DNA of 64,000 bases, from the sequence record PP355766.1; one strand, given 5' to 3'. Shown in pieces: positions 3,001 to 63,779 of this stretch. A program made the translations under genes and the position numbers. The notes under the pieces are model-generated. The model ran no database searches, was not told where the DNA came from, and saw nothing but the letters and a program-made list of their open reading frames with translations. Each line of letters starts with the position of its first letter. Position 1 is the first letter of the stretch.

Positions 3001-5751
3001 AGCGGTAGACTTAATGCCTTCTTCAAGTTTTAAGTTGGAGTAAGTAACCGTTGCTCCGGCAGTACGAACACCTGGACGGAAGCTCAGGAACTTAGTATCA
3101 GCACGAGTGATAATCTTAGCTTCCTGCTTACCTTTAGCTCCGGTCAGTAACTCTTGGAAATTAGTAAAACTTCCAGTAATACTAGAGAACTCTAGTAACA
3201 GGTCTCTCAAAGCAAAGCTGGTACTATCAGTACTAACCTCATAAGTGAAGATGTACGACGTGTTCGGCTTTACAGGAATCTCAACTATAGGCCCCTGCGA
3301 ACCTTGGAAAGGAACAGGGTGTGCACCCGGTCCTGTAGAAGAGGTGGTACTTTCTGTGTTGGTTATAGTAAAGCTGAGGGTATCAGGATTCTTAACCATG
3401 GTACCATTGCTCATTCCGGTCCACTGCTCCAGTGTTTTCTTAACTGGATACAGGTTTACCCCAATGCCTTCACCATCAATACGAACTGGCTCTGACCATG
3501 TACCAACTAGAGCGTTAGTCTGTCCGTTAAACTCGGCCTTAACCATCCATAGCGGGTTTCCCTGAGGAGGTGCATCTGACCAACCTGAAGGAGCCTGTCC
3601 CGTAGGAGTATCAGGTTTTTCAGCTGCCACACGGAAACGCATCCCAATGTAGTTACCTTTAGACCCCGGAGTACCATTAGTACCATCTTCCCCGACTGCA
3701 CGGATCGCTGAACTCCATCCACCGGTACCAACACGCTGACGCATGAAGATATCACCAGTAGTAAAGTTTGCATGCCAGTTAGTAGTACCATCTTTAGACC
3801 ACTGTACTTCTACTGAACCACCTGCCGGACCTTGTGGACCTTGTGGACCAGTAGCACCGGTGGCACCTTTCTCGCCGTCTACACGTAATGGTTCTGACCA
3901 GCCTTCTACCTTCAGTGCATTAGTATTACCATCGAATCTACCAGAACACATCCAAAGAGGGGTTCCAGTTGGTGGGGTACGGCTCCAACCACTAGGATCA
4001 TTGATATTACCTGGCTTCGTGGGCTTACTAGCATTAATCTGGTAAATCTGAACAGTGTAGTCCCCGTTGGAGCCATCAGTACCACCAGTACCTGGAACAC
4101 CAGACCACTGAGACGCGGCTGAGTAGTTGGTACCATCTACCAGAGCAGGAGGGCTCTTTTTAGGGTCAAGGGTACCCTGAACAACGTAAACGTTCTGGTT
4201 CTGTTCAGTACGGTTAGGTGGGAATGCGGACCATCCAGCTGGTGGATAAACTTGGTCAAGCGGGCGACTTGGCAGAGATGTCCCAAGTTTGTAAGCAAAT
4301 ACAGTCTGCTTACCCTGCATACCTGTTTCAAGGTCTACATCACCTCCCGGAGTACCAATCACAACGTTACCAGAAATACGAAGAGTGTCGCCATCCCAGC
4401 GTACATACTGAGTGTTATTACCAAGGTCAAACTTAGCCTTACCATCAGTGTTGTCAACACCCATCCAGACACCGCCTGCGTTATTACCGTACTTCTTACC
4501 CTGAGTGAAGATTGCCGGGTTGTCTTTACCGGTCAGGTTAGTAAGAATTACGTTAGCAGCATTAATGTCTTTAGTAATAACTTTACCATCGACGTTTACA
4601 ATCTTATTAACAGGGTCGAATGAAATCGGCGCTTTACCATTTTCATCGAGTATACCAAGAACTACTGCACCTGTAGCAGCATCGACTAAGAAAGTCTGCT
4701 CCCACTGATTAGTGTTAGAGTTCCAAAGTTTACCCTTGATACCTGCGTAGGTCATCTCTACACCGGTCTCGTTAATGAATGCGTTGTCGAAAGTAGTGCT
4801 CTCGTCTATAATATAAGTAACCTCGTTAGAGTTAGTTATAGACTGAGTATCCGGACCCCAAGCAACCGATAGCACACGAAAACGGTGGCGGATCTTATAA
4901 GGGAAGCTAGTGATAGTACCAGCTTTAGCTGCACCTACGTTTAGCTTATTAGCCTTAGTCCATCCAGTTTTTGCAAACTCATCGTTACTTATATACTGGA
5001 TGATGAATTCACGAACGTTAGCACCAGTGCCACGAGTCCAATCCCATTCTAGACGAACGTCAAAACGCTCCATACCGTCTTGAATGTGGGCAGTTTTGAA
5101 ACGCAGGTTAGTTGGGGCTGATGGAGGAGTGAAATTGTAGGTCAGGTTAAATAGGGAAGGCCAGGTATCATACCCAGAAACATCCACAGTGACACCGTCT
5201 GGCATAGTAACAACACCAGATACGCGGATATTATACCTACCAACAGGAACACCACCAAAGATGATCTGCTCAGTGATTGGGCCACGGTAGTATTTAGTCC
5301 AGGTACTAGAACCTTCCGGTTTCATTTCAATGGTAACGTATTCAGCTTCACCAGAAAGCTCTACGACAACCATAGGGGCACCAACACCCACGTCAACAGA
5401 TTCTGCAAAAGAAGACACCTTGGTGATCTTCGGAGCAGTTTTCATTTTGAAGTTAACAGTGCTAGAGAGGTTCATACCTACTTTAGCAGCCATCAGCTCT
5501 GCATCGACCATTGAGTCGTAGAAAGCACCCTGAGCAGAGTAGGTAGCGCCAGCGATTAAATTGTTAATTGTGGCAATGAAAGTATCAACGCCAGTAAAAT
5601 CCCTACGGGTGGTTACCCCACCCGTAGTTAGCCAGAAAGTTCTACCGATTACATCGTAATCGGAAAAGATTGAGTGCTGAATACTCGCAATCGTGTAACC
5701 GGTCACGATATTCTGCAATACCATTTGAGCTGGTGCTATGTTTGAAATCAT
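1..5751 (-). CDS. pb4: Giant central straight tail fibre (pb4-like N-terminus, collagen-like segments, repeated beta-sandwich modules); partial, runs off the left edge
   Basis: ATG at 5751-5749 abuts the pb3 TAA. Starts MISNIAPAQMVLQNIVTGYTIASIQHSIFSDYDVIGR, like T5 pb4. Hand-translated stretches are open down to base 1 (…NEFDARGKDGADG); no stop seen, consistent with its absence from the ORF track. Confidence 0.9.
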   Translation of the reverse strand, partial: MISNIAPAQMVLQNIVTGYTIASIQHSIFSDYDVIGRTFWLTTGGVTTRRDFTGVDTFIATINNLIAGATYSAQGAFYDSMVDAELMAAKVGMNLSSTVNFKMKTAPKITKVSSFAESVDVGVGAPMVVVELSGEAEYVTIEMKPEGSSTWTKYYRGPITEQIIFGGVPVGRYNIRVSGVVTMPDGVTVDVSGYDTWPSLFNLTYNFTPPSAPTNLRFKTAHIQDGMERFDVRLEWDWTRGTGANVREFIIQYISNDEFAKTGWTKANKLNVGAAKAGTITSFPYKIRHRFRVLSVAWGPDTQSITNSNEVTYIIDESTTFDNAFINETGVEMTYAGIKGKLWNSNTNQWEQTFLVDAATGAVVLGILDENGKAPISFDPVNKIVNVDGKVITKDINAANVILTNLTGKDNPAIFTQGKKYGNNAGGVWMGVDNTDGKAKFDLGNNTQYVRWDGDTLRISGNVVIGTPGGDVDLETGMQGKQTVFAYKLGTSLPSRPLDQVYPPAGWSAFPPNRTEQNQNVYVVQGTLDPKKSPPALVDGTNYSAASQWSGVPGTGGTDGSNGDYTVQIYQINASKPTKPGNINDPSGWSRTPPTGTPLWMCSGRFDGNTNALKVEGWSEPLRVDGEKGATGATGPQGPQGPAGGSVEVQWSKDGTTNWHANFTTGDIFMRQRVGTGGWSSAIRAVGEDGTNGTPGSKGNYIGMRFRVAAEKPDTPTGQAPSGWSDAPPQGNPLWMVKAEFNGQTNALVGTWSEPVRIDGEGIGVNLYPVKKTLEQWTGMSNGTMVKNPDTLSFTITNTESTTSSTGPGAHPVPFQGSQGPIVEIPVKPNTSYIFTYEVSTDSTSFALRDLLLEFSSITGSFTNFQELLTGAKGKQEAKIITRADTKFLSFRPGVRTAGATVTYSNLKLEEGIKSTAYSVEASDSIGEKGDQGTQGPQGPQGNQGPQGNQGPQGAKGDNAKGFSLSSLGQTFTYDAEGKLKSDATILFQAFRQNTTANVTWSAKDEKGGSITLTSTSNTGATLTAANFKTSKSVVVTAVCDGITDQITIVRLDDGSNALVGLLTNEGSTVLANYAGYVQNYSTGSGDFKVFYGAKDITSECTFSTMEKNNLDADITSAGKYTLKGMPAGTDVINGWVDLRAVHPTYGAVVRRVATTKSILAKGYDRVITTSFENGNKGTWSTGSVQGVSGATIVAAGFSKALVISARDCIEDANSFPVVAGQKYRLGMWIMASESKVNINMGMRIVRAADGVVDWQGTLIIAQGTVVPGGWSYIEKEFTVGSSNTGIAMPWIQMAGSSGSDLGKAYVTDIHIFALEMDGEKGDTGATGATGSQGPQGPQGNKGDKGDTGATGAQGPAGNSVNVQWSKDGSTNWHAGFQTGDIFMRQQVNGVWGGAIRAVGEDGADGTDGDYISMKFIVQDTKPGTPTGNNPGSWSDAPPVGSPLWMTKGTMNASGQLQGTWSNPVRLDGTINPNLFAVRKWMAAMTGTESGTSKNDIEKLTHTLTRTSGTDNSAPGCYATPYVGGGAFSHPVTPGKRYTLTYNIDAASEVQTRDIIFWQANPDSSQSTYIEELNTGTSIKVKRTFVVPTGMNYLTLRPSALTLNVATTWSMIKLEEGGEKTEYQVEYSDSIGLVGKSVLVQWSKDSSASNWHDTFQTGDLYMRQNVDGVWGPAIRAVGEKGEIGPDGKTGNYTNIIFRISETKPAKPTGNKPTDWFDSPPDGSPLWMSTATFDGGTNVIIGTWSDPVRIDASGVGENFWSFKEWMASIQSAKGSGSSISKNYDQLRFRVTAGAAETDAYTQPYFGPGTYFIPVQKSTMYTVSWEVDEATKARLFVLQFDNGDGNSFVRNNYLETNKAGRHSLTITTGANTDYISLRFSVNAAGGTNVISRAKVELGAFPTAWILNEFDARGKDGADG

Positions 5752-32686: not shown

Positions 32687-32827
32687 GTTTCTTACTCCAG
32701 TTTAGTTTATTGGGTTATCCGGTTAACACTCTGATATTCTAGAGCGTTAACAGAAAACTCAATTACCCTTACTGAGAGAATCGACTTTTCCAGATTTTTA
32801 AAGAGCGGTGTTGCTTATTGAGATTCT

Positions 32828-32856
32828 ATAATAAAGCGTTATCGGCAGACTGTCAA
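32828..32856 (-). promoter_or_regulatory. Pre-early promoter
   Basis: TTGACA-N17-TATTAT. Confidence 0.8.
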
Positions 32857-33041
32857 GCGTTATTTTGTAAAGATTTTAAATAACGCATCATGTTATCCCA
32901 AATCATCGGCAAGCCTTGCTGACCTCCGCGCTGGTAAGAGCGGTAACGCCGCGCCATATCGCGTTGCATTTTGACCAGTTCCGAACTTGCCATTTTGTTC
33001 AATTTTGCTGCCGGTTTAGATGATATTACAAAGCGTTTCAT
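32853..33041 (-). CDS. Pre-early basic microprotein (62 aa)
   Basis: AAAGGT RBS; follows the 55-aa ORF. Confidence 0.65.
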   Translation of the reverse strand: MKRFVISSKPAAKLNKMASSELVKMQRDMARRYRSYQRGGQQGLPMIWDNMMRYLKSLQNNA

Positions 33042-33056
33042 GTTGTCAACCTTTAA

Positions 33057-33224
33057 TTAGTGGAGTGTATGATTTCGTTTAGTTTGCATAATGATTTGGC
33101 CGTCTTTATGAATGAAGGCTAAATCTACGTCGTACACGTTTGAGTAAGTCTCTATAAAGTGTTCGGCGTCTGCTACTGTAAACTCGTTTACAATCTCGCT
33201 ACTCATTACGTTTTCTTTTAACAT
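33057..33224 (-). CDS. Pre-early microprotein (55 aa, MLKENVMSSEIVNEF…)
   Basis: Hand-translated; TAAGGA RBS; below the ORF-track cutoff. Confidence 0.6.
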   Translation of the reverse strand: MLKENVMSSEIVNEFTVADAEHFIETYSNVYDVDLAFIHKDGQIIMQTKRNHTLH

Positions 33225-33296
33225 GTTTTCGGTTTCCTTATAAAGTAAAGAAGCCGATAACGCTTTTTATAGAATCCCAAATTGTTAAAGAGCAGT

Positions 33297-33423
33297 GTAG
33301 GGCGGGGACAGACTATCTTGTTTCGGCGTTTCCTTTCGCGGTAGTCGGGGCAATGTTGCCGCCTCCAGATACCTAACTACTAGTGAAACGCTTTCGTGTT
33401 TCCGTTTCGTCTTGCCGCCCTAC
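33297..33423 (-). ncRNA. Candidate structured pre-early RNA or leader
   Basis: 9-bp closing helix GTAGGGCGG/CCGCCCTAC, internal hairpins, six GAAA motifs, promoter directly upstream. Confidence 0.55.
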
Positions 33424-33430
33424 GAGATAA

Positions 33431-33458
33431 ATAATAACACAATGACGTTTAGCCGCAA
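33431..33458 (-). promoter_or_regulatory. Pre-early promoter
   Basis: TTGCGG-N16-TATTAT. Confidence 0.55.
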
Positions 33459-33818
33459 GCGGAGAATTGTAAAGAAGCGTAAAGAGAAAATGACCCTCAC
33501 CATGAATAGGAAACGCGCACACGTTGCACAGCTATTAAAGAAAGTCAACGAATATTTTTACTATTTTTCTTCAAAAGGGGTTGACAAAACCTATTTCACA
33601 CGAGGTGAGGAGATCGCCACATACCCGGTATGATTCATCGGCTTTTATCTAAAACCGCTTAGAATCGATTCTAGAGCGTTTTAGACCCTGTTAATAACTT
33701 ATACAAAAAGCAAAAATGAAATTTAATTAGTTATCCACTAGACAAATGATTATTTCTATGAAAACGCAAAAATAATGCTTGCGTTTATTTTATGCTGCAC
33801 TCCTGTTTTCCGGGCAAG

Positions 33819-33916
33819 TTATCCACAGCACAAAATAACTTGACAAGCTGAGAAGCGGTATAACGAGATATCCCCAGACTTATCCACAGGTTATCCTACT
33901 GTATATTTATACAGTA
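33819..33916. promoter_or_regulatory. DnaA boxes plus LexA (SOS) box, left copy
   Basis: TTATCCACA at 33819-33827 and 33880-33888; TACTGTATATTTATACAGTA at 33897-33916. Confidence 0.8.
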
Positions 33917-34030
33917 TATTCCGGCAGCGGTAATACTCTAATATGCCCCTAGAACGCTCTATAACGCATTCTAAGCGCTTTAAATTTAGAGGCCATATTA
34001 AAGGCCGTTGCTAGAGGGCGCGGAAAAATA

Positions 34031-34059
34031 AAAAGCCCGCTCATTATAAGCAGGCTTTT
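34031..34059. terminator. Bidirectional-type terminator ending the 34-37 kb operon
   Basis: AAAAGCC…GGCTTTT stem with A and T tails. Confidence 0.7.
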
Positions 34060-34073
34060 AATTCGTTAGCTAA

Positions 34074-58617: not shown

Positions 58618-58694
58618 TGGCAAACCCCAGGAGACTCGAACTCCTACTGCACGGTTTTGGAGACCGGCGTGCTGTCCAGTAACACTCGGGGAAT
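58618..58694 (-). tRNA. tRNA-Trp(CCA), atypical acceptor stem
   Basis: Anticodon loop CT-CCA-AA, T arm AGGAG-TTCGAGT-CTCCT, encoded CCA; two T:T mismatches in the acceptor stem. Confidence 0.7.
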
Positions 58695-58698
58695 AAAG

Positions 58699-58890
58699 TT
58701 AGCTACCGTGGTAGACAGATACCGTCTTACCATTCTGATTCATAACGTAGGCTACCTCATCTTCTTTCAAGAAGATATGCTGATCAAGACCAGCAATAGA
58801 GATGCTCTTCTGCTTAGGGTTAAACCCAACGCTTGAACCATCGTGAATTTCTTCGCCACCGCTCGGTGACATTACTTTAACTGTTAACAT
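58699..58890 (-). CDS. Hypothetical protein (63 aa)
   Basis: AGGAG RBS. Confidence 0.7.
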   Translation of the reverse strand: MLTVKVMSPSGGEEIHDGSSVGFNPKQKSISIAGLDQHIFLKEDEVAYVMNQNGKTVSVYHGS

Positions 58891-59008
58891 TTGCTTCTCC
58901 TATAGTTTGCCATCTCTGGCTGTTAAGTGACGTCCTGACTATCCTAGAGTCGAGTTCCAGGCAGACGTCGGCACCCCGGACTACATAGGCTCTAGAACAG
59001 CAAATAAT

Positions 59009-59110
59009 TTAAGAGCTAAACATACTAAGACGTAGCGCACGCACACGATCTACGCAGGCTTCCATCTCAGCTAAGAGTGAGAACACTAGTTCTGCATCAA
59101 AGGCTTTCAT
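59009..59110 (-). CDS. Microprotein (33 aa, MKAFDAELVFSLLAEMEAC…)
   Basis: GAGGT RBS; hand-translated. Confidence 0.55.
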   Translation of the reverse strand: MKAFDAELVFSLLAEMEACVDRVRALRLSMFSS

Positions 59111-59209
59111 TGTTGTACCTCTCAAGTAGTATAGATAAAATGGCCTTACCGGCTCCCAGTTCCTTGTTTAATTCCCCGCAACGTCAGGGGACGGTCATTT
59201 TACCGAATT

Positions 59210-59285
59210 TGGAGCGACTAGGGGGAATCGAACCCCACTCAGTACCGCTTGGAAGGCGGACGCTGTAACCCGTACAGTTAATCGC
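59210..59285 (-). tRNA. tRNA-Gly(TCC)
   Basis: Acceptor GCGATTA/TAGTCGC, loop CT-TCC-AA, TTCGATT, CCA. Confidence 0.8.
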
Positions 59286-59288
59286 AAA

Positions 59289-59381
59289 TTATTTTATTAC
59301 GCAAGTGCAACCGCCCGAGAATATAGACCCGTAACACTTGTCGCACATAATGTCTTCTATTTTAAGAACTTTAAATCTCAT
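59289..59381 (-). CDS. Cys-rich microprotein (30 aa)
   Basis: MRFKVLKIEDIMCDKCYGSIFSGGCTCVIK; RBS weak. Confidence 0.45.
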   Translation of the reverse strand: MRFKVLKIEDIMCDKCYGSIFSGGCTCVIK

Positions 59382-59409
59382 AGAGAGTTATTACCTGTAG
59401 TAATATTTA

Positions 59410-59482
59410 TGGTGCTGGCTTCCGGAATTGAACCGGAATTTAACGACAATGTAAACTTAATCACACTGTAACCATAACCAGC
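59410..59482 (-). pseudogene. tRNA-like element: intact acceptor and T arms, degenerate D and anticodon arms
   Basis: GCTGGTT/AGCCAGC-A-CCA; TCCGG-TTCAATT-CCGGA; no pairing anticodon stem. Confidence 0.65.
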
Positions 59483-59488
59483 AAAAAA

Positions 59489-59564
59489 TGGTGCCCCAAG
59501 TAGGAATCGAACCCACGACCTACCGCTTACAAGGCGGTTGCTCTCCCGGCTGAGCTATTGAGGC
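59489..59564 (-). tRNA. tRNA-Thr(TGT)
   Basis: Canonical cloverleaf, CT-TGT-AA, CCA. Confidence 0.95.
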
Positions 59565-59569
59565 AAGAT

Positions 59570-59646
59570 TGGTCTCCCCTAAGTGATTTGAACACTTGAC
59601 CTGACGCTCCCAAAGCGCCCGCTCTGCCAGACTGAGCTAAGGGGAA
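59570..59646 (-). tRNA. tRNA-Pro(TGG)
   Basis: Canonical cloverleaf, TT-TGG-GA, CCA. Confidence 0.93.
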
Positions 59647-59651
59647 GAATA

Positions 59652-59731
59652 TGGCGGAGTTGCTACTTAAAGCGTTTCACGTACTATCGTTGCTCGTCAT
59701 GCTCTAGCAGAATATGACAGCGAAAACCCCG
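59652..59731 (-). ncRNA. CCA-ending small RNA with acceptor-like stem
   Basis: CGGGGTT/AACTCCG followed by CCA; internal GTCAT/ATGAC hairpin; no T arm. Confidence 0.4.
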
Positions 59732-59896
59732 TTATAAAGTATACATACGATTTAACACTTCAGCATTTGGCCGCATAGACTCCGCCTCTTTTTGAAATTG
59801 TTCATCCAGTAATTTCAGGCGTTTTCTAAGCATGTCCTGATCCTTTTCAGTCAGGACGACGTTTTTAGATATTTCAAATAGCTCCTGAAGTGTCAT
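59732..59896 (-). CDS. Microprotein (54 aa, MTLQELFEISKN…)
   Basis: GAGG RBS-like sequence in the tRNA-Leu 3' end; hand-translated. Confidence 0.6.
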   Translation of the reverse strand: MTLQELFEISKNVVLTEKDQDMLRKRLKLLDEQFQKEAESMRPNAEVLNRMYTL

Positions 59897-59900
59897 AGTT

Positions 59901-59986
59901 TGGTACCTCTGGAGGGACTCGAACCCTCAATCATTTAAGCGCCACGTTTTAAGCATGGTGTGTATTTCCAGTTCCACCACAGAGGT
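59901..59986 (-). tRNA. tRNA-Leu(TAA)
   Basis: Class II with long variable arm, CT-TAA-AA, CCA. Confidence 0.93.
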
Positions 59987-59994
59987 AAAATACG

Positions 59995-60333
59995 TTAGCG
60001 TAGCTCTAAGCCCTGGAAGTAGCGAGGGAACGGGCTGCCTACTTCAAAGCTGATCCCCCAGTTGAGTTCCACCAGCTCTGACTTATCCAAAAGCAGGTCA
60101 TTGCCTTCAAAGATGTAACCGTATACAGTTGGGAACATCGCTGCTAGATCTTCCATATTGGAATAAGCATTATGCTCTTCACGGAATTGCTCAAACTCTT
60201 CAAAGAACTTCTCAAGGAAGAACTCTGGTACAATGAACGTTACAACGTCAGTGCTGTCATCGATACGATAGACCGTTGCCTGGAATAAGCCGACACCGAC
60301 CAGGTTGATAGCAGGAGTAGTAAAAATATCCAT
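59995..60333 (-). CDS. Acidic hypothetical protein
   Basis: 112 aa. Confidence 0.75.
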   Translation of the reverse strand: MDIFTTPAINLVGVGLFQATVYRIDDSTDVVTFIVPEFFLEKFFEEFEQFREEHNAYSNMEDLAAMFPTVYGYIFEGNDLLLDKSELVELNWGISFEVGSPFPRYFQGLELR

Positions 60334-60335
60334 TA

Positions 60336-60530
60336 TTAATATACCTTGATTAAAGTGTTGTCGATGGTGTTCAGGAACTTAACTGCTGCATCTCTATTAG
60401 AGAATGTCTCCAGCACGATAATGTTGTTCTCAGGATCACCGTTGCGCACTCGTACCTGGTACGATACGATCACTTCCCAGCGGAACCATAAAGCTCGTGG
60501 ATTATATCGCATAAGAATTTTTTGGTTCAT
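60336..60530 (-). CDS. Hypothetical protein (64 aa)
   Basis: First gene after the promoter. Confidence 0.7.
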   Translation of the reverse strand: MNQKILMRYNPRALWFRWEVIVSYQVRVRNGDPENNIIVLETFSNRDAAVKFLNTIDNTLIKVY

Positions 60531-60561
60531 TAGGTAAGCCCTCTCATTAATTTATACAATT

Positions 60562-60590
60562 ATTATATTATAAATAAGAGCGTTTAGCAA
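60562..60590 (-). promoter_or_regulatory. T5-type early promoter
   Basis: AAAATTCAT-TTGCTA-N17-TATAAT. Confidence 0.85.
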
Positions 60591-60616
60591 ATGAATTTTA
60601 GAACTTTCGGGATATT

Positions 60617-60830
60617 GCCACCCTCAGTCGATGCCACTACTTGAGACGTTATAGGCAATCTATCTCAAGTTGTCTGCCCCATTGCTTTCAGTGATTTCTG
60701 CACGCAGAAATTCTTCTTGACTGGAGGACTTTACCACGTCAAACGGCCGGAAATCGGTGGCTTATTTTATCCTGTCACCCATCACCTGCTTGTCTGAGTT
60801 TAATCAGAGAGCCTGTAACGGGCTACTTGG
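60617..60830 (-). ncRNA. Candidate multibranch ncRNA
   Basis: GCCACC/GGTGGC closes three hairpins (ACTTGAGA/TCTCAAGT, ATTTCTGC/GCAGAAAT, TTGAC/GTCAA); no ORF. Confidence 0.55.
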
Positions 60831-60834
60831 GATT

Positions 60835-60969
60835 TGGAAGTATCAGTTGGATTCGAACCAACGCACCAGCTAACCTAGAGATCACCAGACGTTTCCAAGT
60901 CTGCTCACTAACGGCCAGCCGCTTTACCATGAGCCTTAGGACTATTCAGCTCCATAAGCTATTGATACT
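60835..60969 (-). ncRNA. 135-nt tRNA-like RNA with a branched insert in place of the anticodon loop
   Basis: Acceptor AGTATCA/TGATACT-T-CCA; T arm GTTGG-TTCGAAT-CCAAC; D-like AGCT-TATGG-AGCT; about 85-nt structured central arm. Confidence 0.75.
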
Positions 60970-60976
60970 ATTAATT

Positions 60977-61054
60977 TGGTGCAACCGGTTCGATTTGAAC
61001 GAACGACCCCTGGACTTTCAAACCAGTGCTCTCACCTCGCTGAGCTACAGTTGC
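60977..61054 (-). tRNA. tRNA-Phe(GAA)
   Basis: Cloverleaf, TT-GAA-AG, CCA. Confidence 0.9.
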
Positions 61055-61083
61055 GTAATTCATGCCTGCTCCTTTGAATCAAG

Positions 61084-61180
61084 AAGTCCACCCCGGTCTT
61101 TGGGTCTTTGCAGTACATCACGCTGCTCTGATGTTTGGTGGAACTTGGGAGACTACGTGTTACTCCCCTCACAGACCGGG
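61084..61180 (-). ncRNA. Candidate structured RNA between tRNA-Lys and tRNA-Phe
   Basis: CCCGGTCT/AGACCGGG closing helix with inner ACATCA/TGATGT and GGGAG/CTCCC hairpins. Confidence 0.45.
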
Positions 61181-61229
61181 ATTCCCCGCTATCCATGATG
61201 CTTAACCGATTAGCTGAAGTCCCATAATG

Positions 61230-61305
61230 TGGTAGACCGCCCGGGACTCGAACCCGGAACCTATCGCTTAAAAGGCGAGTGCTCTAACCATTGAGCTAGC
61301 GATCT
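61230..61305 (-). tRNA. tRNA-Lys(TTT)
   Basis: Cloverleaf, CT-TTT-AA, CCA. Confidence 0.95.
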
Positions 61306-61477
61306 ATGGATATGTTATTGTTACTGCACCGTTAAAGAGCTGTAACTCCCCCGTATTGCGGAGGTGAGATAATTGAAAGATATTTAAGTTATACTTCTCA
61401 GCAACTTCGCCCATAGTGGAGACGTAGAAGTTAAACCCCCTTACGTCTACTGTTACCACGTAATCTTTATCTTTCAT
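61304..61477 (-). CDS. Microprotein (57 aa, MKDKDYVVTVDV…)
   Basis: GAGGT RBS; start moved so it does not overlap tRNA-Cys. Confidence 0.6.
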   Translation of the reverse strand: MKDKDYVVTVDVRGFNFYVSTMGEVAEKYNLNIFQLSHLRNTGELQLFNGAVTITYP

Positions 61478-61490
61478 AAGTACCTCGATC

Positions 61491-61564
61491 TGGAGCACCA
61501 TCATGGATTTTAACCATGCTGCGAGGGTTTGCAAGCCTCTGCCTAGTCACTCGGCCAATGATGC
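61491..61564 (-). tRNA. tRNA-Cys(GCA)
   Basis: TT-GCA-AA, U73, CCA; unusual T loop TTAAAAT. Confidence 0.85.
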
Positions 61565-61644
61565 ATTGTTTAATTAGGGCGCACCGGAGTTCCACCGATT
61601 GCTAACGCTTCACCGCAACCTAAGTCGCTGTTCTTACCCTAAAT

Positions 61645-61722
61645 TGGCGGGAGAGGTGAGATTCGAACTCACTGTCATTCGCTTAACAGGCGACCGCCTA
61701 TACCACTTACTGCTTCTCTCCC
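61645..61722 (-). tRNA. tRNA-Asn(GTT)
   Basis: GGGAGAG/CTCTCCC, CT-GTT-AA, G73, CCA. Confidence 0.9.
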
Positions 61723-61727
61723 AAATA

Positions 61728-61771
61728 GATTTAACAACCAAAGCGCTTTCGTCCATTTAAGCTACAAGGCC
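61728..61771 (-). pseudogene. 5'-half tRNA relic (acceptor strand, D arm, TT-GTT-AA loop)
   Basis: GGCCTTG-TA-GCTT-AAATGGACGA-AAGC-G-CTTTGG-TTGTTAA, with no 3' half following. Confidence 0.5.
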
Positions 61772-61782
61772 TTTATGCCGCC

Positions 61783-61827
61783 TGTTGCGTACGCGGGATT
61801 CGAACCCGGATCTCTTTGATTGTCAAA
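61783..61827 (-). pseudogene. 3'-half tRNA relic (T arm plus acceptor strand)
   Basis: TCAAAG-AGATC-CGGG-TTCGAAT-CCCG-CGTACGC-AACA, with no 5' half upstream. Confidence 0.5.
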
Positions 61828-61829
61828 AT

Positions 61830-61917
61830 TGGTGGGGGAAGATGGAGTCGAACCACCCGAGCCGCAATGGCAACGATTTTACAGACCGCTCTGCTACCAC
61901 TTACAGAATATTCCCCC
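61830..61917 (-). tRNA. tRNA-Tyr(GTA)
   Basis: Class II with variable arm, CT-GTA-AA, CCA. Confidence 0.93.
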
Positions 61918-61989
61918 GTATTTGAAGAAGCTCTCGTGAGAACCTCTTCAAATACCTCGTCGAAACGAGATATTTGCTAACTTATTGTG

Positions 61990-62145
61990 ACTAGGGCTGA
62001 CCCTTGTGTCCGAGGATACCTCTAGACGGTCATATCTCTTAGCCCAGAGAGAAACTAGCTTTGGGTGTTTCGGGGTTACTCCTTCTCGGCTCTACTGTTA
62101 ACCCTTATTCGAACTACATACCGAGTTATGAGCGTACTCACTAGT
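61990..62145 (-). ncRNA. Candidate multibranch ncRNA between tRNA-Asp and tRNA-Tyr
   Basis: ACTAG/CTAGT closing; TGAG-TACG-CTCA, CTCGG/CCGAG, CCCA/TGGG and TGACC/GGTCA helices; no ORF. Confidence 0.5.
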
Positions 62146-62151
62146 TTAAAT

Positions 62152-62228
62152 TGGCGCGGCTAACGGGATTCGAACCCGTGGCTCCGACGTGACAGGCCGG
62201 TATGTTGACCGCTGAACACCATAGCCGC
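62152..62228 (-). tRNA. tRNA-Asp(GTC)
   Basis: Cloverleaf, CT-GTC-AC, G73, CCA. Confidence 0.95.
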
Positions 62229-62236
62229 TTAATTTG

Positions 62237-62350
62237 TTATTCCGGTTCGTATTCCATTAAGTCGTCTGACTCACAAGTTGGACACTCCCAATGGCATTCA
62301 CTTAACTCACCACAATCGGAACAAATGTATAACTTAACTTCATCTTCCAT
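62237..62350 (-). CDS. Rubredoxin-like Zn-ribbon microprotein (37 aa)
   Basis: MEDEVKLYICSDCGELSECHWECPTCESDDLMEYEPE; GAGG RBS; first after the promoter. Confidence 0.7.
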   Translation of the reverse strand: MEDEVKLYICSDCGELSECHWECPTCESDDLMEYEPE

Positions 62351-62380
62351 TTGCTTTTCCTCTTTCGTTTCAATATAAAT

Positions 62381-62409
62381 ATTATACTAAATTTCAGGGT
62401 ACTAGGCAA
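62381..62409 (-). promoter_or_regulatory. T5-type promoter driving the Asp-Tyr-Asn-Cys-Lys-Phe RNA operon
   Basis: AAAAATTCAT-TTGCCT-N17-TATAAT. Confidence 0.85.
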
Positions 62410-62421
62410 ATGAATTTTTCA

Positions 62422-62637
62422 TTAATCGTCTTCTTCGTCCCATGAGAGGGAGTGCATGAAGATCGGTAGAACTGTAGGTTCTACGTCAAGCGACGGGTAG
62501 AAGTAAGTTTTACCTTGAGACAGGTCAATGAACGTAGGGGTTCTACCCTCCTGCATGTGTTCATCAACCTTGTCTAGGGCGTCGTTTAACAGTTCGAAGC
62601 AGTCAGTATTCGCTCCGCAAACAACGATAAAATCCAT
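62422..62637 (-). CDS. Acidic hypothetical protein
   Basis: 71 aa. Confidence 0.7.
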   Translation of the reverse strand: MDFIVVCGANTDCFELLNDALDKVDEHMQEGRTPTFIDLSQGKTYFYPSLDVEPTVLPIFMHSLSWDEEDD

Positions 62638-63011
62638 TAACGACCCCCGTTCGGGAAACCGGAGGCAAGCAGGAAGCGAACAACGTCTTCCAGCGACGGG
62701 CCTTCTCCATCTTCTTCCAGATGGAAAGGCAGAATAGCGTACTGCATGTCAGCTGGTGCTACCGGGGTGAAGGTAGGCTCTGCGGGAGCTTCTGCCATGA
62801 ACACTGCGGTTCCGTCAACCAGACGATCGATCGCTTCACAGACTTCTAGCTGTTCTTCGATCTTGGCCTCGCGTTCGCGCATCAGAGCCAGCAGTTCAGT
62901 GCGGTATTCTTCGATACGGCGGTCTAGAGACTCGATGTTATTGGACAGGTTATCCTGTACAATCATCAGGCGGACTACAGCAGAATTTCCATTAGTTGGT
63001 CGTGTAAACAT
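62637..63011 (-). CDS. Coiled-coil hypothetical protein
   Basis: 124 aa. Confidence 0.75.
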   Translation of the reverse strand: MFTRPTNGNSAVVRLMIVQDNLSNNIESLDRRIEEYRTELLALMREREAKIEEQLEVCEAIDRLVDGTAVFMAEAPAEPTFTPVAPADMQYAILPFHLEEDGEGPSLEDVVRFLLASGFPNGGR

Positions 63012-63031
63012 GATATTTCCTCGATTGATTA

Positions 63032-63304
63032 TTAGATAAAGTCGCCGGTAGAGACTACCAGTTTAATGCTTTTACGGAAGATTTCGTGCATACCGTCGTG
63101 AACCATTACTGTCCCGACCAGTTTTGGAAGGTAGACTTCCACATCAATATTACCATATGGCATGGCGTGCTCGTCAGTAAGTTTAGTCCATAACTCCGGC
63201 TGAAGCTCGCAGTTATAGAACACCATCCATTCATGATCACCATCCCATCCGTCCCAGTTAAGAACCAGTGCGGATTCAATACCTGTTGCAGTAACCTTTG
63301 ACAT
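63032..63304 (-). CDS. Hypothetical protein
   Basis: 90 aa; GAGGAG RBS. Confidence 0.75.
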   Translation of the reverse strand: MSKVTATGIESALVLNWDGWDGDHEWMVFYNCELQPELWTKLTDEHAMPYGNIDVEVYLPKLVGTVMVHDGMHEIFRKSIKLVVSTGDFI

Positions 63305-63335
63305 TTGCTAACTCCTCTCGTTAATTTATGAATCT

Positions 63336-63364
63336 ATTATAGCAATTATAAGAGCGTTTAGCAA
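63336..63364 (-). promoter_or_regulatory. T5 PN25-like promoter
   Basis: TTGCTA-N17-TATAATAGATTCATAAATT. Confidence 0.9.
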
Positions 63365-63542
63365 ATGAATTTTTGAATTATCCGCTCCGAAGAGCGGTAA
63401 TCCAGGCTTGCAGCTGTTAGTTACACTTGGTTTGAAGTTGTCTAGGACATTAACTAGAGGTTGATGGCCTCCCCGTTTCTGCAACTAACATTTCACAGCT
63501 TCTCGGACGTTTGACGGCCCTGACCGAAGTCTCACTGTAAAT

Positions 63543-63618
63543 TGGTACTTGCTGCTGGTTTCGAACCAGCTACCCTCGCCGTGTAAAGACGATGCTCTCC
63601 CGATTGAGCTAAGCAAGT
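63543..63618 (-). tRNA. tRNA-Val(TAC)
   Basis: Cloverleaf, TT-TAC-AC, CCA. Confidence 0.95.
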
Positions 63619-63621
63619 ATT

Positions 63622-63698
63622 TGGTGGTCAATAGTGGATTCGAACCACTGTAGTCTCACGTATGAAGCGAGTGCATAAACCATCTCTGCCAACTGACC
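63622..63698 (-). tRNA. tRNA with CAT anticodon (Met elongator or Ile2)
   Basis: Cloverleaf, TT-CAT-AC, G1-C72 paired, CCA. Confidence 0.9.
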
Positions 63699-63703
63699 TT
63701 ATT

Positions 63704-63779
63704 TGGTACTCCGAACTGGACTCGAACCAGTGACCTAACGATTATCGGTCGTTTGCTCTACCAACTGAGCTATCGAAGC
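63704..63779 (-). tRNA. tRNA-Ile(GAT)
   Basis: Cloverleaf, CC-GAT-AA (C33), CCA. Confidence 0.92.

Follow-up and report, generated by a model that had tools for sequence, protein, structure and literature searches.

A predicted pre-early promoter and a conserved 5' stem with a swappable loop in the proposed leader of a T5-like Klebsiella phage

Genome setting of the cassette

The DNA analysed here, referred to as the window, comprises positions 1-64000 of PP355766.1 (Klebsiella phage vB_Kpn_AM_K4) and holds a circularly permuted Sugarlandvirus genome (T5-like, Demerecviridae). Its first 27.9 kb correspond to the right end of Sugarlandvirus genomes, with tail, terminase and portal genes, and the part from ~28.0 kb onwards to the left end, where dmp, A1 and A2 are all encoded on the minus strand. 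The record as a whole measures 288,685 bp, is classed under Straboviridae and has a junction near window 27.9-28.0 kb; it is probably a joined or mixed assembly. Twelve tRNA genes are clustered at 58621-63779 on the minus strand, as expected in the T5-like early region. The 127-nt structured cassette described below, delimited by its fold and by alignments, runs on the minus strand from 33423 to 33297, ~5.4 kb from the genome left end. It equals 5523-5649 of phage Sealy, within the terminal repeat that T5-like phages inject first, and synteny with dmp, A1 and A2 confirms the location in first-step-transfer DNA proposed in an earlier note on this stretch.

The cassette sits in a gene-free gap of 850 nt (33225-34073). 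In T5 terms this gap represents the 'Repeat Regions 1 and 2', which adjoin each other in phages without the HNH insertion (10.1101/866236), and by homology the cassette fits the position of T5 Repeat Region 1, located in the terminal repeat with A2/hdi on one side and the DnaA-box region on the other. At the far side of the gap, a strong intrinsic terminator with a 13-bp stem and a T run (34031-34059, minus strand), annotated in phage Sealy, closes the upstream operon, and the Rfam matches at 34.03 kb reflect this terminator. DnaA-box-like copies of TTATCCAC(A) at 33729-33746, 33817-33834 and 33880-33889 match the IRC-spacer-IRD region (Repeat Region 2), which Davison ties to the T5 injection stop (10.1101/866236). 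They are bracketed by an imperfect 48-nt inverted repeat (33637-33684 and 33949-33996) that probably corresponds by homology to T5 IRB/IRB'. In the Klebsiella phages Kpn9-P3 and FZ41 the end of an HNH endonuclease gene lies just upstream of the leader promoter, and T5 carries such a gene ~380 nt upstream of this promoter (618-1136 of locus L043).

Directly 3' of the cassette lies a leader tail (33275-33296, minus strand) that contains GCTCTTTAA and is found after every T5-like cassette. Together with the homologue of T5 inverted repeat A' (IRA'; 33253-33280, minus strand), recognised from the T5 IRA/IRA' annotation, this conserved tail lies in the 72 nt between the cassette end and the ORF start. 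A Shine-Dalgarno sequence, AAGGAAA (33233-33239), and a spacer, conserved in relatives (33225-33239, minus strand), precede the ATG at 33224 and place ribosome-binding site and start codon at +185 to +200. The first ORF, of 55 aa (33057-33224, minus strand; phrog_25172, E 1.5e-39), is annotated in relatives; next comes a 62-aa homologue of T5 Hdi (T5.008) at 32853-33041 on the minus strand (BLASTP 43% identity over 54 aa, E 1e-14; phrog_4718). T5 Hdi is a host division inhibitor and toxic (10.64898/2026.04.02.716235). A terminator scan found no terminator-like site after the cassette on the gene strand, and the layout of an intrinsic terminator is absent in that neither strand has a U run after the helix. 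Of the three roles that the earlier note had considered for the RNA, a leader for the downstream small ORFs is the only one that fits this anatomy, with no terminator and with a Shine-Dalgarno sequence and ORFs ahead.

The next pre-early promoter (32828-32856, minus strand) consists of TTGACA, 17 nt and TATTAT, with 11/12 consensus matches. It is a paralogue of the leader promoter, ~600 nt downstream and lacking the cassette, and corresponds in position to T5 P-D/E20. Both promoters share the upstream block (second copy at 32871) and the downstream leader tail, which is repeated at 32790-32811 after the second promoter. The partner of the IRA' homologue, at 32818-32846, overlaps the -10 of this promoter, the repeat being ~31 nt long, and the two copies (32818-32846 and 33253-33280) could form a long-range duplex within one long transcript.

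A predicted promoter ahead of the cassette

Upstream of the cassette the elements of a promoter follow one another on the minus strand. An A/T-rich block in the position of an UP element (33459-33478), which includes TTTACAA (33467-33473), is kept in 48 distinct T5-like upstream sequences. The -35-like hexamer TTGCGG (33453-33458) begins with TTG in every distinct upstream sequence, and reads TTGCGC or TTGCGG in T5-like phages and TTGACA or TTGACG in the copies found in Phapecoctavirus. The spacer, 16 nt in the window, is constant in length (16-17 nt) and variable in sequence across the 48 distinct T5-like sequences. It leads to an extended -10 element (33431-33439) composed of TGT and then TATTAT (33431-33436), the TG at -15/-14 being 33438-33439. 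Of 55 distinct sequences, nearly all have TATTAT or TAATAT as the -10 hexamer and 31 have the TGn extension, and the distance from the end of the -10 to the G is 7 nt in all copies. From this fixed distance the transcription start is predicted at G 33423 (minus strand), the first base of the closing helix. The -10 box that the earlier note had placed before the helix-opening G is thus found as TATTAT, seven bases and then G 33423.

A search with a 161-nt query returned 456 phage records, 55 of which cover most of the query; in the remaining records, T5 included, the alignment is limited to the segment from the -10 to ~+12, at 94-100% identity. The block from -10 to +1 is nearly invariant in T5-like phages and the sequence upstream shows conservation of the promoter type, in line with the earlier description of the RNA as promoter-driven. 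Judged from these comparisons, the pattern of conservation is the signature of a sigma-70 promoter. A consensus promoter scan of the window misses the site at 33431-33458 because the -35 matches the consensus at only 3/6 positions.

No mapped transcript 5' end at this site was found in the literature consulted on T5-like phages, in which P-H22, P-D/E20 and the gene 011 promoter are the only experimentally characterised promoters, and the Bas33 RNA-seq (PMC13250531) was reported per gene only. T5 coordinates 5015-5046 align to the -10/+1 block (AY587007.1 annotation, Wang et al. 2005). T5 records annotate no promoter at this site and give instead a 35-aa ORF, T5.009 (AY543070.1 4915-5022), which lies on the leader and whose ATG is missing in the window. 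Gene 009 occurs in <15% of Demerecviridae (10.64898/2026.04.02.716235) and T5.009 is probably not a gene. Since P-H22 and P-D/E20 lie inside or after hdi, T5 hdi needs a promoter upstream.

Sequence and fold of the cassette

On the minus strand the cassette is closed by a perfectly paired helix of 9 bp, P1 (GUAGGGCGG/CCGCCCUAC, 33415-33423 with 33297-33305), as the earlier note had read it. Within it the fold places a short helix, P1b (33409-33412 with 33310-33313), a hairpin, P2 (33385-33402), a variable central hairpin domain (33341-33380) and a purine-rich joiner (33314-33340), all on the same strand. P2 is the previously noticed GAAAC/GUUUC hairpin; it has a GAAA loop and contains a single A.C mismatch. 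P1 remains the closing helix of the domain in a fold of the entire 5' UTR. Two further helices proposed before stand only in part. GUAGU and ACUAC are able to pair, but RNAalifold favours a different pairing there, and GGCAA and UUGCC can form 4 bp only, as a longer helix would leave a loop of 2 nt.

The six GAAA motifs counted earlier are all present, at element positions 16, 22, 29, 87, 92 and 100, against 1.5 expected, and none of 5000 dinucleotide shuffles reaches six; the cassette is the densest GAAA stretch in the 64 kb on both strands. Perfect 9-bp inverted repeats at this spacing are, in contrast, at chance level (38 in the window versus 38.1 in shuffles), and the z-scores of the fold energy are similar on both strands (-3.0 on the gene strand, -2.8 on the opposite strand). 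The significance of the structure therefore comes from its conservation and not from the fold alone.

Coding does not account for the cassette, as had been stated before: only mechanical ORFs of 20-49 aa overlap it, and the cassettes of relatives differ by indels of 1-2 nt. Six Sugarlandvirus records have tiny CDSs called over it inconsistently, on either strand. ARAGORN found no tRNA-like gene on the cassette, and Rfam gave nothing on it at the gathering threshold or at E up to 10; five loci with other cargos likewise gave no match on the element at gathering and permissive thresholds. A match to a characterised family, which the earlier note had named as a reason to abandon its reading, was thus not encountered. 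The 127-base GAAA-rich fold is real.

Conservation and covariation of the helices

Conservation of P1 was assessed in ten sequences that span five cargo types, and all nine pairs are kept in 10/10 of them. Pair 6 is G-C in five sequences, A-U in four and G-U in one (phage polluks), pair 9 has one G-U, and the covariation score of the helix is reached by 11/500 shuffles. At the level of sequence comparison, pairing of the closing helix is shown by covariation. The term 'structured' in the earlier note holds in this sense, the helix being kept via compensatory and wobble changes across unrelated interiors.

Within the GAAA-rich type, represented by an alignment of ten distinct sequences, 98% of the cells are paired. 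P2 has one compensatory exchange, A-U to U-A, in Pantoea phage AAS21, in which the central hairpin is replaced by a different hairpin, and P1 and P1b have one-sided G-U changes. RNAalifold on this type recovers P1, P1b and P2 and not the GUAGU/ACUAC helix. Taken as a whole, the previously proposed structure has one compensatory pair only in this type, a result that 177/500 shuffles equal and that is not significant, and the share of variable columns among paired positions (4/60) does not differ significantly from that among unpaired ones (11/70; p 0.17). Substitutions that discriminate between the strands are too few for a decision, four favouring the gene strand and two apical changes the opposite one. 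Of the six GAAA motifs, three do not vary among ten relatives.

Interchangeable interiors

The interior of the cassette is hypervariable: its place is taken by at least five cargos, unrelated or truncated, or else by a short hairpin, even between identical or nearly identical flanks. The GAAA-rich interior of 109 nt is found in ~55 Sugarlandvirus records and in Pantoea phage AAS21. An unrelated interior, the Salmonella type, occurs in 23 records of Salmonella phages and in one Klebsiella phage that has the flanks of a Sugarlandvirus, and phage S114 has a shortened version of it. T5-type phages have a short form with two hairpins. Two further interiors (L106 and L102) come from metagenomes only, one of them lying between flanks nearly identical to those of the window; BLAST of both against phage records gave no match, and an IMG/VR scan for the 3' arm and tail revealed no additional forms. 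The Klebsiella phage in which Sugarlandvirus flanks are combined with the Salmonella-type cargo is Kpn9-P3. In the second alignment (A2) the row of L092, which has wrong coordinates, is disregarded.

The distance between the arms accordingly ranges from 4 nt to ~110 nt. In the short T5-type forms the first base is paired only by a weak 4-bp GUAG/CUAC helix. Some T5-type phages (four loci) carry the second leader hairpin, at ~+25 to +45, as its exact reverse complement, with the loop TAAACTTC where others have GAAGTTTA and with the stem kept. Four other cargo types share a related purine motif, GGAAAC with GRAA close behind, immediately downstream of the 5' arm.

The same +1 module in other phages

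Exact-pattern scans of IMG/VR, metagenomes and genomes led to T5-like loci and to contigs of ~150 kb, which match Phapecoctavirus and Certrevirus-like phages. These contigs carry many copies of a TTGACA-type promoter followed by 7 nt and the same +1 sequence, which there forms a hairpin of 7-8 bp with a 4-nt loop and is followed by the Shine-Dalgarno sequence and ATG of different small genes. At least six copies of the module lie on a metagenome contig of 8.2 kb, on which a promoter scan finds their hexamers independently. Between copies the hairpin is invariant and the -10 hexamers vary. Some Phapecoctavirus copies have 3-4 unpaired bases at the 5' end, and one copy is annotated as a terminator in a public record. 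Phapecoctavirus-type DNA, namely the 8.2-kb contig and two other loci, also has a variant hairpin behind other promoters of the series. The window contains a single copy only, even with 2-3 mismatches allowed, in keeping with one per T5-like terminal repeat. As far as sequence goes, the layout of the Phapecoctavirus module is that of the promoter-early stem-loop (PeSL) cassettes known from T4-type phages (Arbiol et al. 2010 PMC2839356; Comeau et al. 2014 PMC4122927).

A proposed protected 5' end of a pre-early mRNA

The reading that is favoured here, with somewhat better than even chances of being right, takes the cassette to be the 5' end of a pre-early mRNA, in which a promoter is joined to a conserved stem that would protect the 5' end and that carries an enlarged and swappable loop. 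A host sigma-70 promoter, as suggested by its conservation, would start transcription at G 33423 and proceed leftwards on the minus strand. The first nine bases of the transcript would pair with bases 119-127, burying the RNA 5' end and closing a 127-nt domain, and transcription would run on through the conserved tail into the 55-aa ORF and the Hdi homologue. That 5' secondary structure stabilises mRNA by way of RppH and RNase E is established (review PMC3997798). A paired 5' end would deny these enzymes their single-stranded terminus and could prolong the life of the mRNA in the first minutes of infection, and protection of the 5' end appears to be the most likely function. The ancestral form, to judge from relatives, would have been a +1 hairpin with a 4-nt loop, as in the other phages, and in the T5-like lineage this loop would have been enlarged and exchanged, the GAAA-rich interior being one of several cargos. 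Stem and promoter would thus form a fixed frame in which the interior is free to vary, and the interior may be without conserved function.

Comparable elements are the 5' stabilisers of E. coli ompA and papA (PMC3997798), which place a helix at or near the 5' end of a long 5' UTR, before the ribosome-binding site, as the cassette does if transcription begins at the predicted G. They differ from the cassette in that its helix closes a large multi-branch domain instead of forming a simple hairpin and in that its 5' end is predicted. With T5 Repeat Region 1 (Wang et al. 2005; 10.1101/866236) the cassette shares the locus, by homology, and IRA' in the leader tail, whereas the literature gives DNA repeats there, without promoter or hairpin annotation, and T5 itself has the short form without GAAA-rich cargo. 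The region has thus been described before as DNA repeats, and both promoter-stem-loop cassettes and 5' stabiliser hairpins are already known; the promoter call, the +1 module across three phage groups and the swappable loop were not found described in the literature and records consulted.

Several observations are not explained by the favoured reading, the GAAA enrichment among them. The invariance of the sequence from +1 to +12 exceeds the needs of promoter function or of 5' protection. This invariance, its sharing among unrelated phages, the turnover of cargos and the recurrent purine motif find no explanation in a leader model, and because of them a reading with functional cargos stays alive at low probability. 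According to this reading, which is judged unlikely, the loop of the conserved stem on the first pre-early transcript would offer a slot for unrelated structured RNAs of 80-110 nt, of which close relatives have at least four long types besides the short form. The cargos, that of the window among them, would then act as RNAs with a function of their own, for instance as decoys for host or defence proteins, produced in the first minutes after phage entry and subject to diversifying selection.

Alternative explanations

The resemblance to PeSL cassettes suggests a different account, in which the stem-loop attenuates read-through from upstream and, jointly with the conserved promoter, serves as a patch of homology for recombination that shuffles the sequences nearby, and in which the RNA fold of the interior is incidental. 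Like a PeSL, the locus has a sigma-70-type early promoter with an A/T-rich tract, both recognised by sequence and conservation; a G+C-rich stem-loop at the promoter, then a Shine-Dalgarno sequence and a small early ORF; and a mosaic, fast-changing neighbourhood. The adjacent stable stem-loop is represented by P1 and the inner hairpins, and in relatives by the short hairpin form. PeSLs act as terminators and promote shuffling, and crossovers have been seen even inside the loop (PMC2839356; PMC4122927), and cargos and first ORFs are indeed mosaic across lineages here, as in the case of the Salmonella-type cargo between Sugarlandvirus flanks. The multi-copy habit of PeSLs, which cluster in variable regions, and the annotation of one copy as a terminator are however found only in the Phapecoctavirus version of the module; the window and every T5-like repeat have one copy each. 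PeSLs come from T4-type myoviruses and the cassette from a T5-like siphovirus (Sugarlandvirus, Demerecviridae). Its stem begins at the predicted +1, the RNA 5' end, and not within or upstream of the promoter, and its loop is expanded to ~110 nt and is itself the variable part. Against this account speak the lack of a U run after the helix on both strands and the strong terminator that already closes the upstream operon 600 nt earlier. Selection on the gene-strand RNA is indicated, moreover, by the wobble intermediate found at pair 6 and by the G-U changes, and a PeSL-type account of the T5-like cassette is considered improbable.

The proposal that the 127-nt domain is a free-standing small RNA, released or terminated, whose GAAA and GGAAAC repeats titrate a host or defence protein, draws on the enrichment of GAAA (6 versus 1.5), on the invariance of three of these motifs among ten relatives and on the recurrence of GGAAAC with a nearby GRAA in four other cargo types. 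A helix that joins the 5' and 3' ends is also typical of stable processed RNAs, and fast cargo turnover between close relatives resembles an arms-race locus. Sponge RNAs such as CsrB/CsrC and 6S RNA share with the cassette a short purine motif repeated in a structured RNA, but the cassette has neither a terminator of its own nor an Rfam or tRNA-like match, only three of its six motifs are conserved and the other three are lost in relatives, and the sequence continues into a Shine-Dalgarno sequence and an ORF. GGA motifs do not exceed expectation (3 observed). Between these same flanks, other phages have a cargo without GAAA richness, or a short hairpin alone. The sponge or decoy envisaged in the earlier note is thus unsupported, the GAAA-rich interior being confined to Sugarlandvirus and one Pantoea phage, and nearly identical flanks holding unrelated interiors or a short hairpin; a discrete small RNA is rated slightly below the PeSL-type account.

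A leader acting on translation is a weaker candidate still, and is thought quite improbable. Its purine-rich single strands would constitute a ribosome standby or enhancer site, or the site of a regulator (e.g. CsrA), and would thereby control how the 55-aa ORF and the Hdi homologue are translated. The joiner (33325-33335 region) shares AAGGAAAC with the true Shine-Dalgarno sequence (33232-33239), which lies within a weak hairpin in the full-leader fold, and the toxicity of Hdi makes control of its dosage plausible. Such a pair of AAGGAAAC matches is, however, at chance level in the window (8/100 shuffles reach two matches), GGA of the CsrA type is not enriched, and cargos without the motif precede the same ORF. 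A signal at the level of DNA, suggested by the position of the site in the conserved untranslated Repeat Region 1 beside the DnaA-box region (10.1101/866236), is the least credible of all, given that an arm distance of 4 to ~110 nt fits a single-strand fold and not a duplex-binding dimer or cruciform, that the module also occurs in myoviruses without two-step injection, and that Davison judged the region too far left for the injection stop signal (10.1101/866236).

Significance for T5-like and other enterobacterial phages

If the cassette is the protected 5' end of a pre-early mRNA, the predicted promoter, which is absent from T5 annotations, would explain the expression of hdi and of the T5 009 region, and on the leader model the doubtful gene 009 would be leader RNA rather than a gene. 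The idea of a promoter-plus-stem-loop cassette, taken from T4-type phages, would be extended to three more phage groups, and the near-identical +1 module points to an exchange of regulatory cassettes among unrelated enterobacterial phages. A small hypervariable RNA slot in the DNA that enters first is also where an anti-defence RNA would be most useful.
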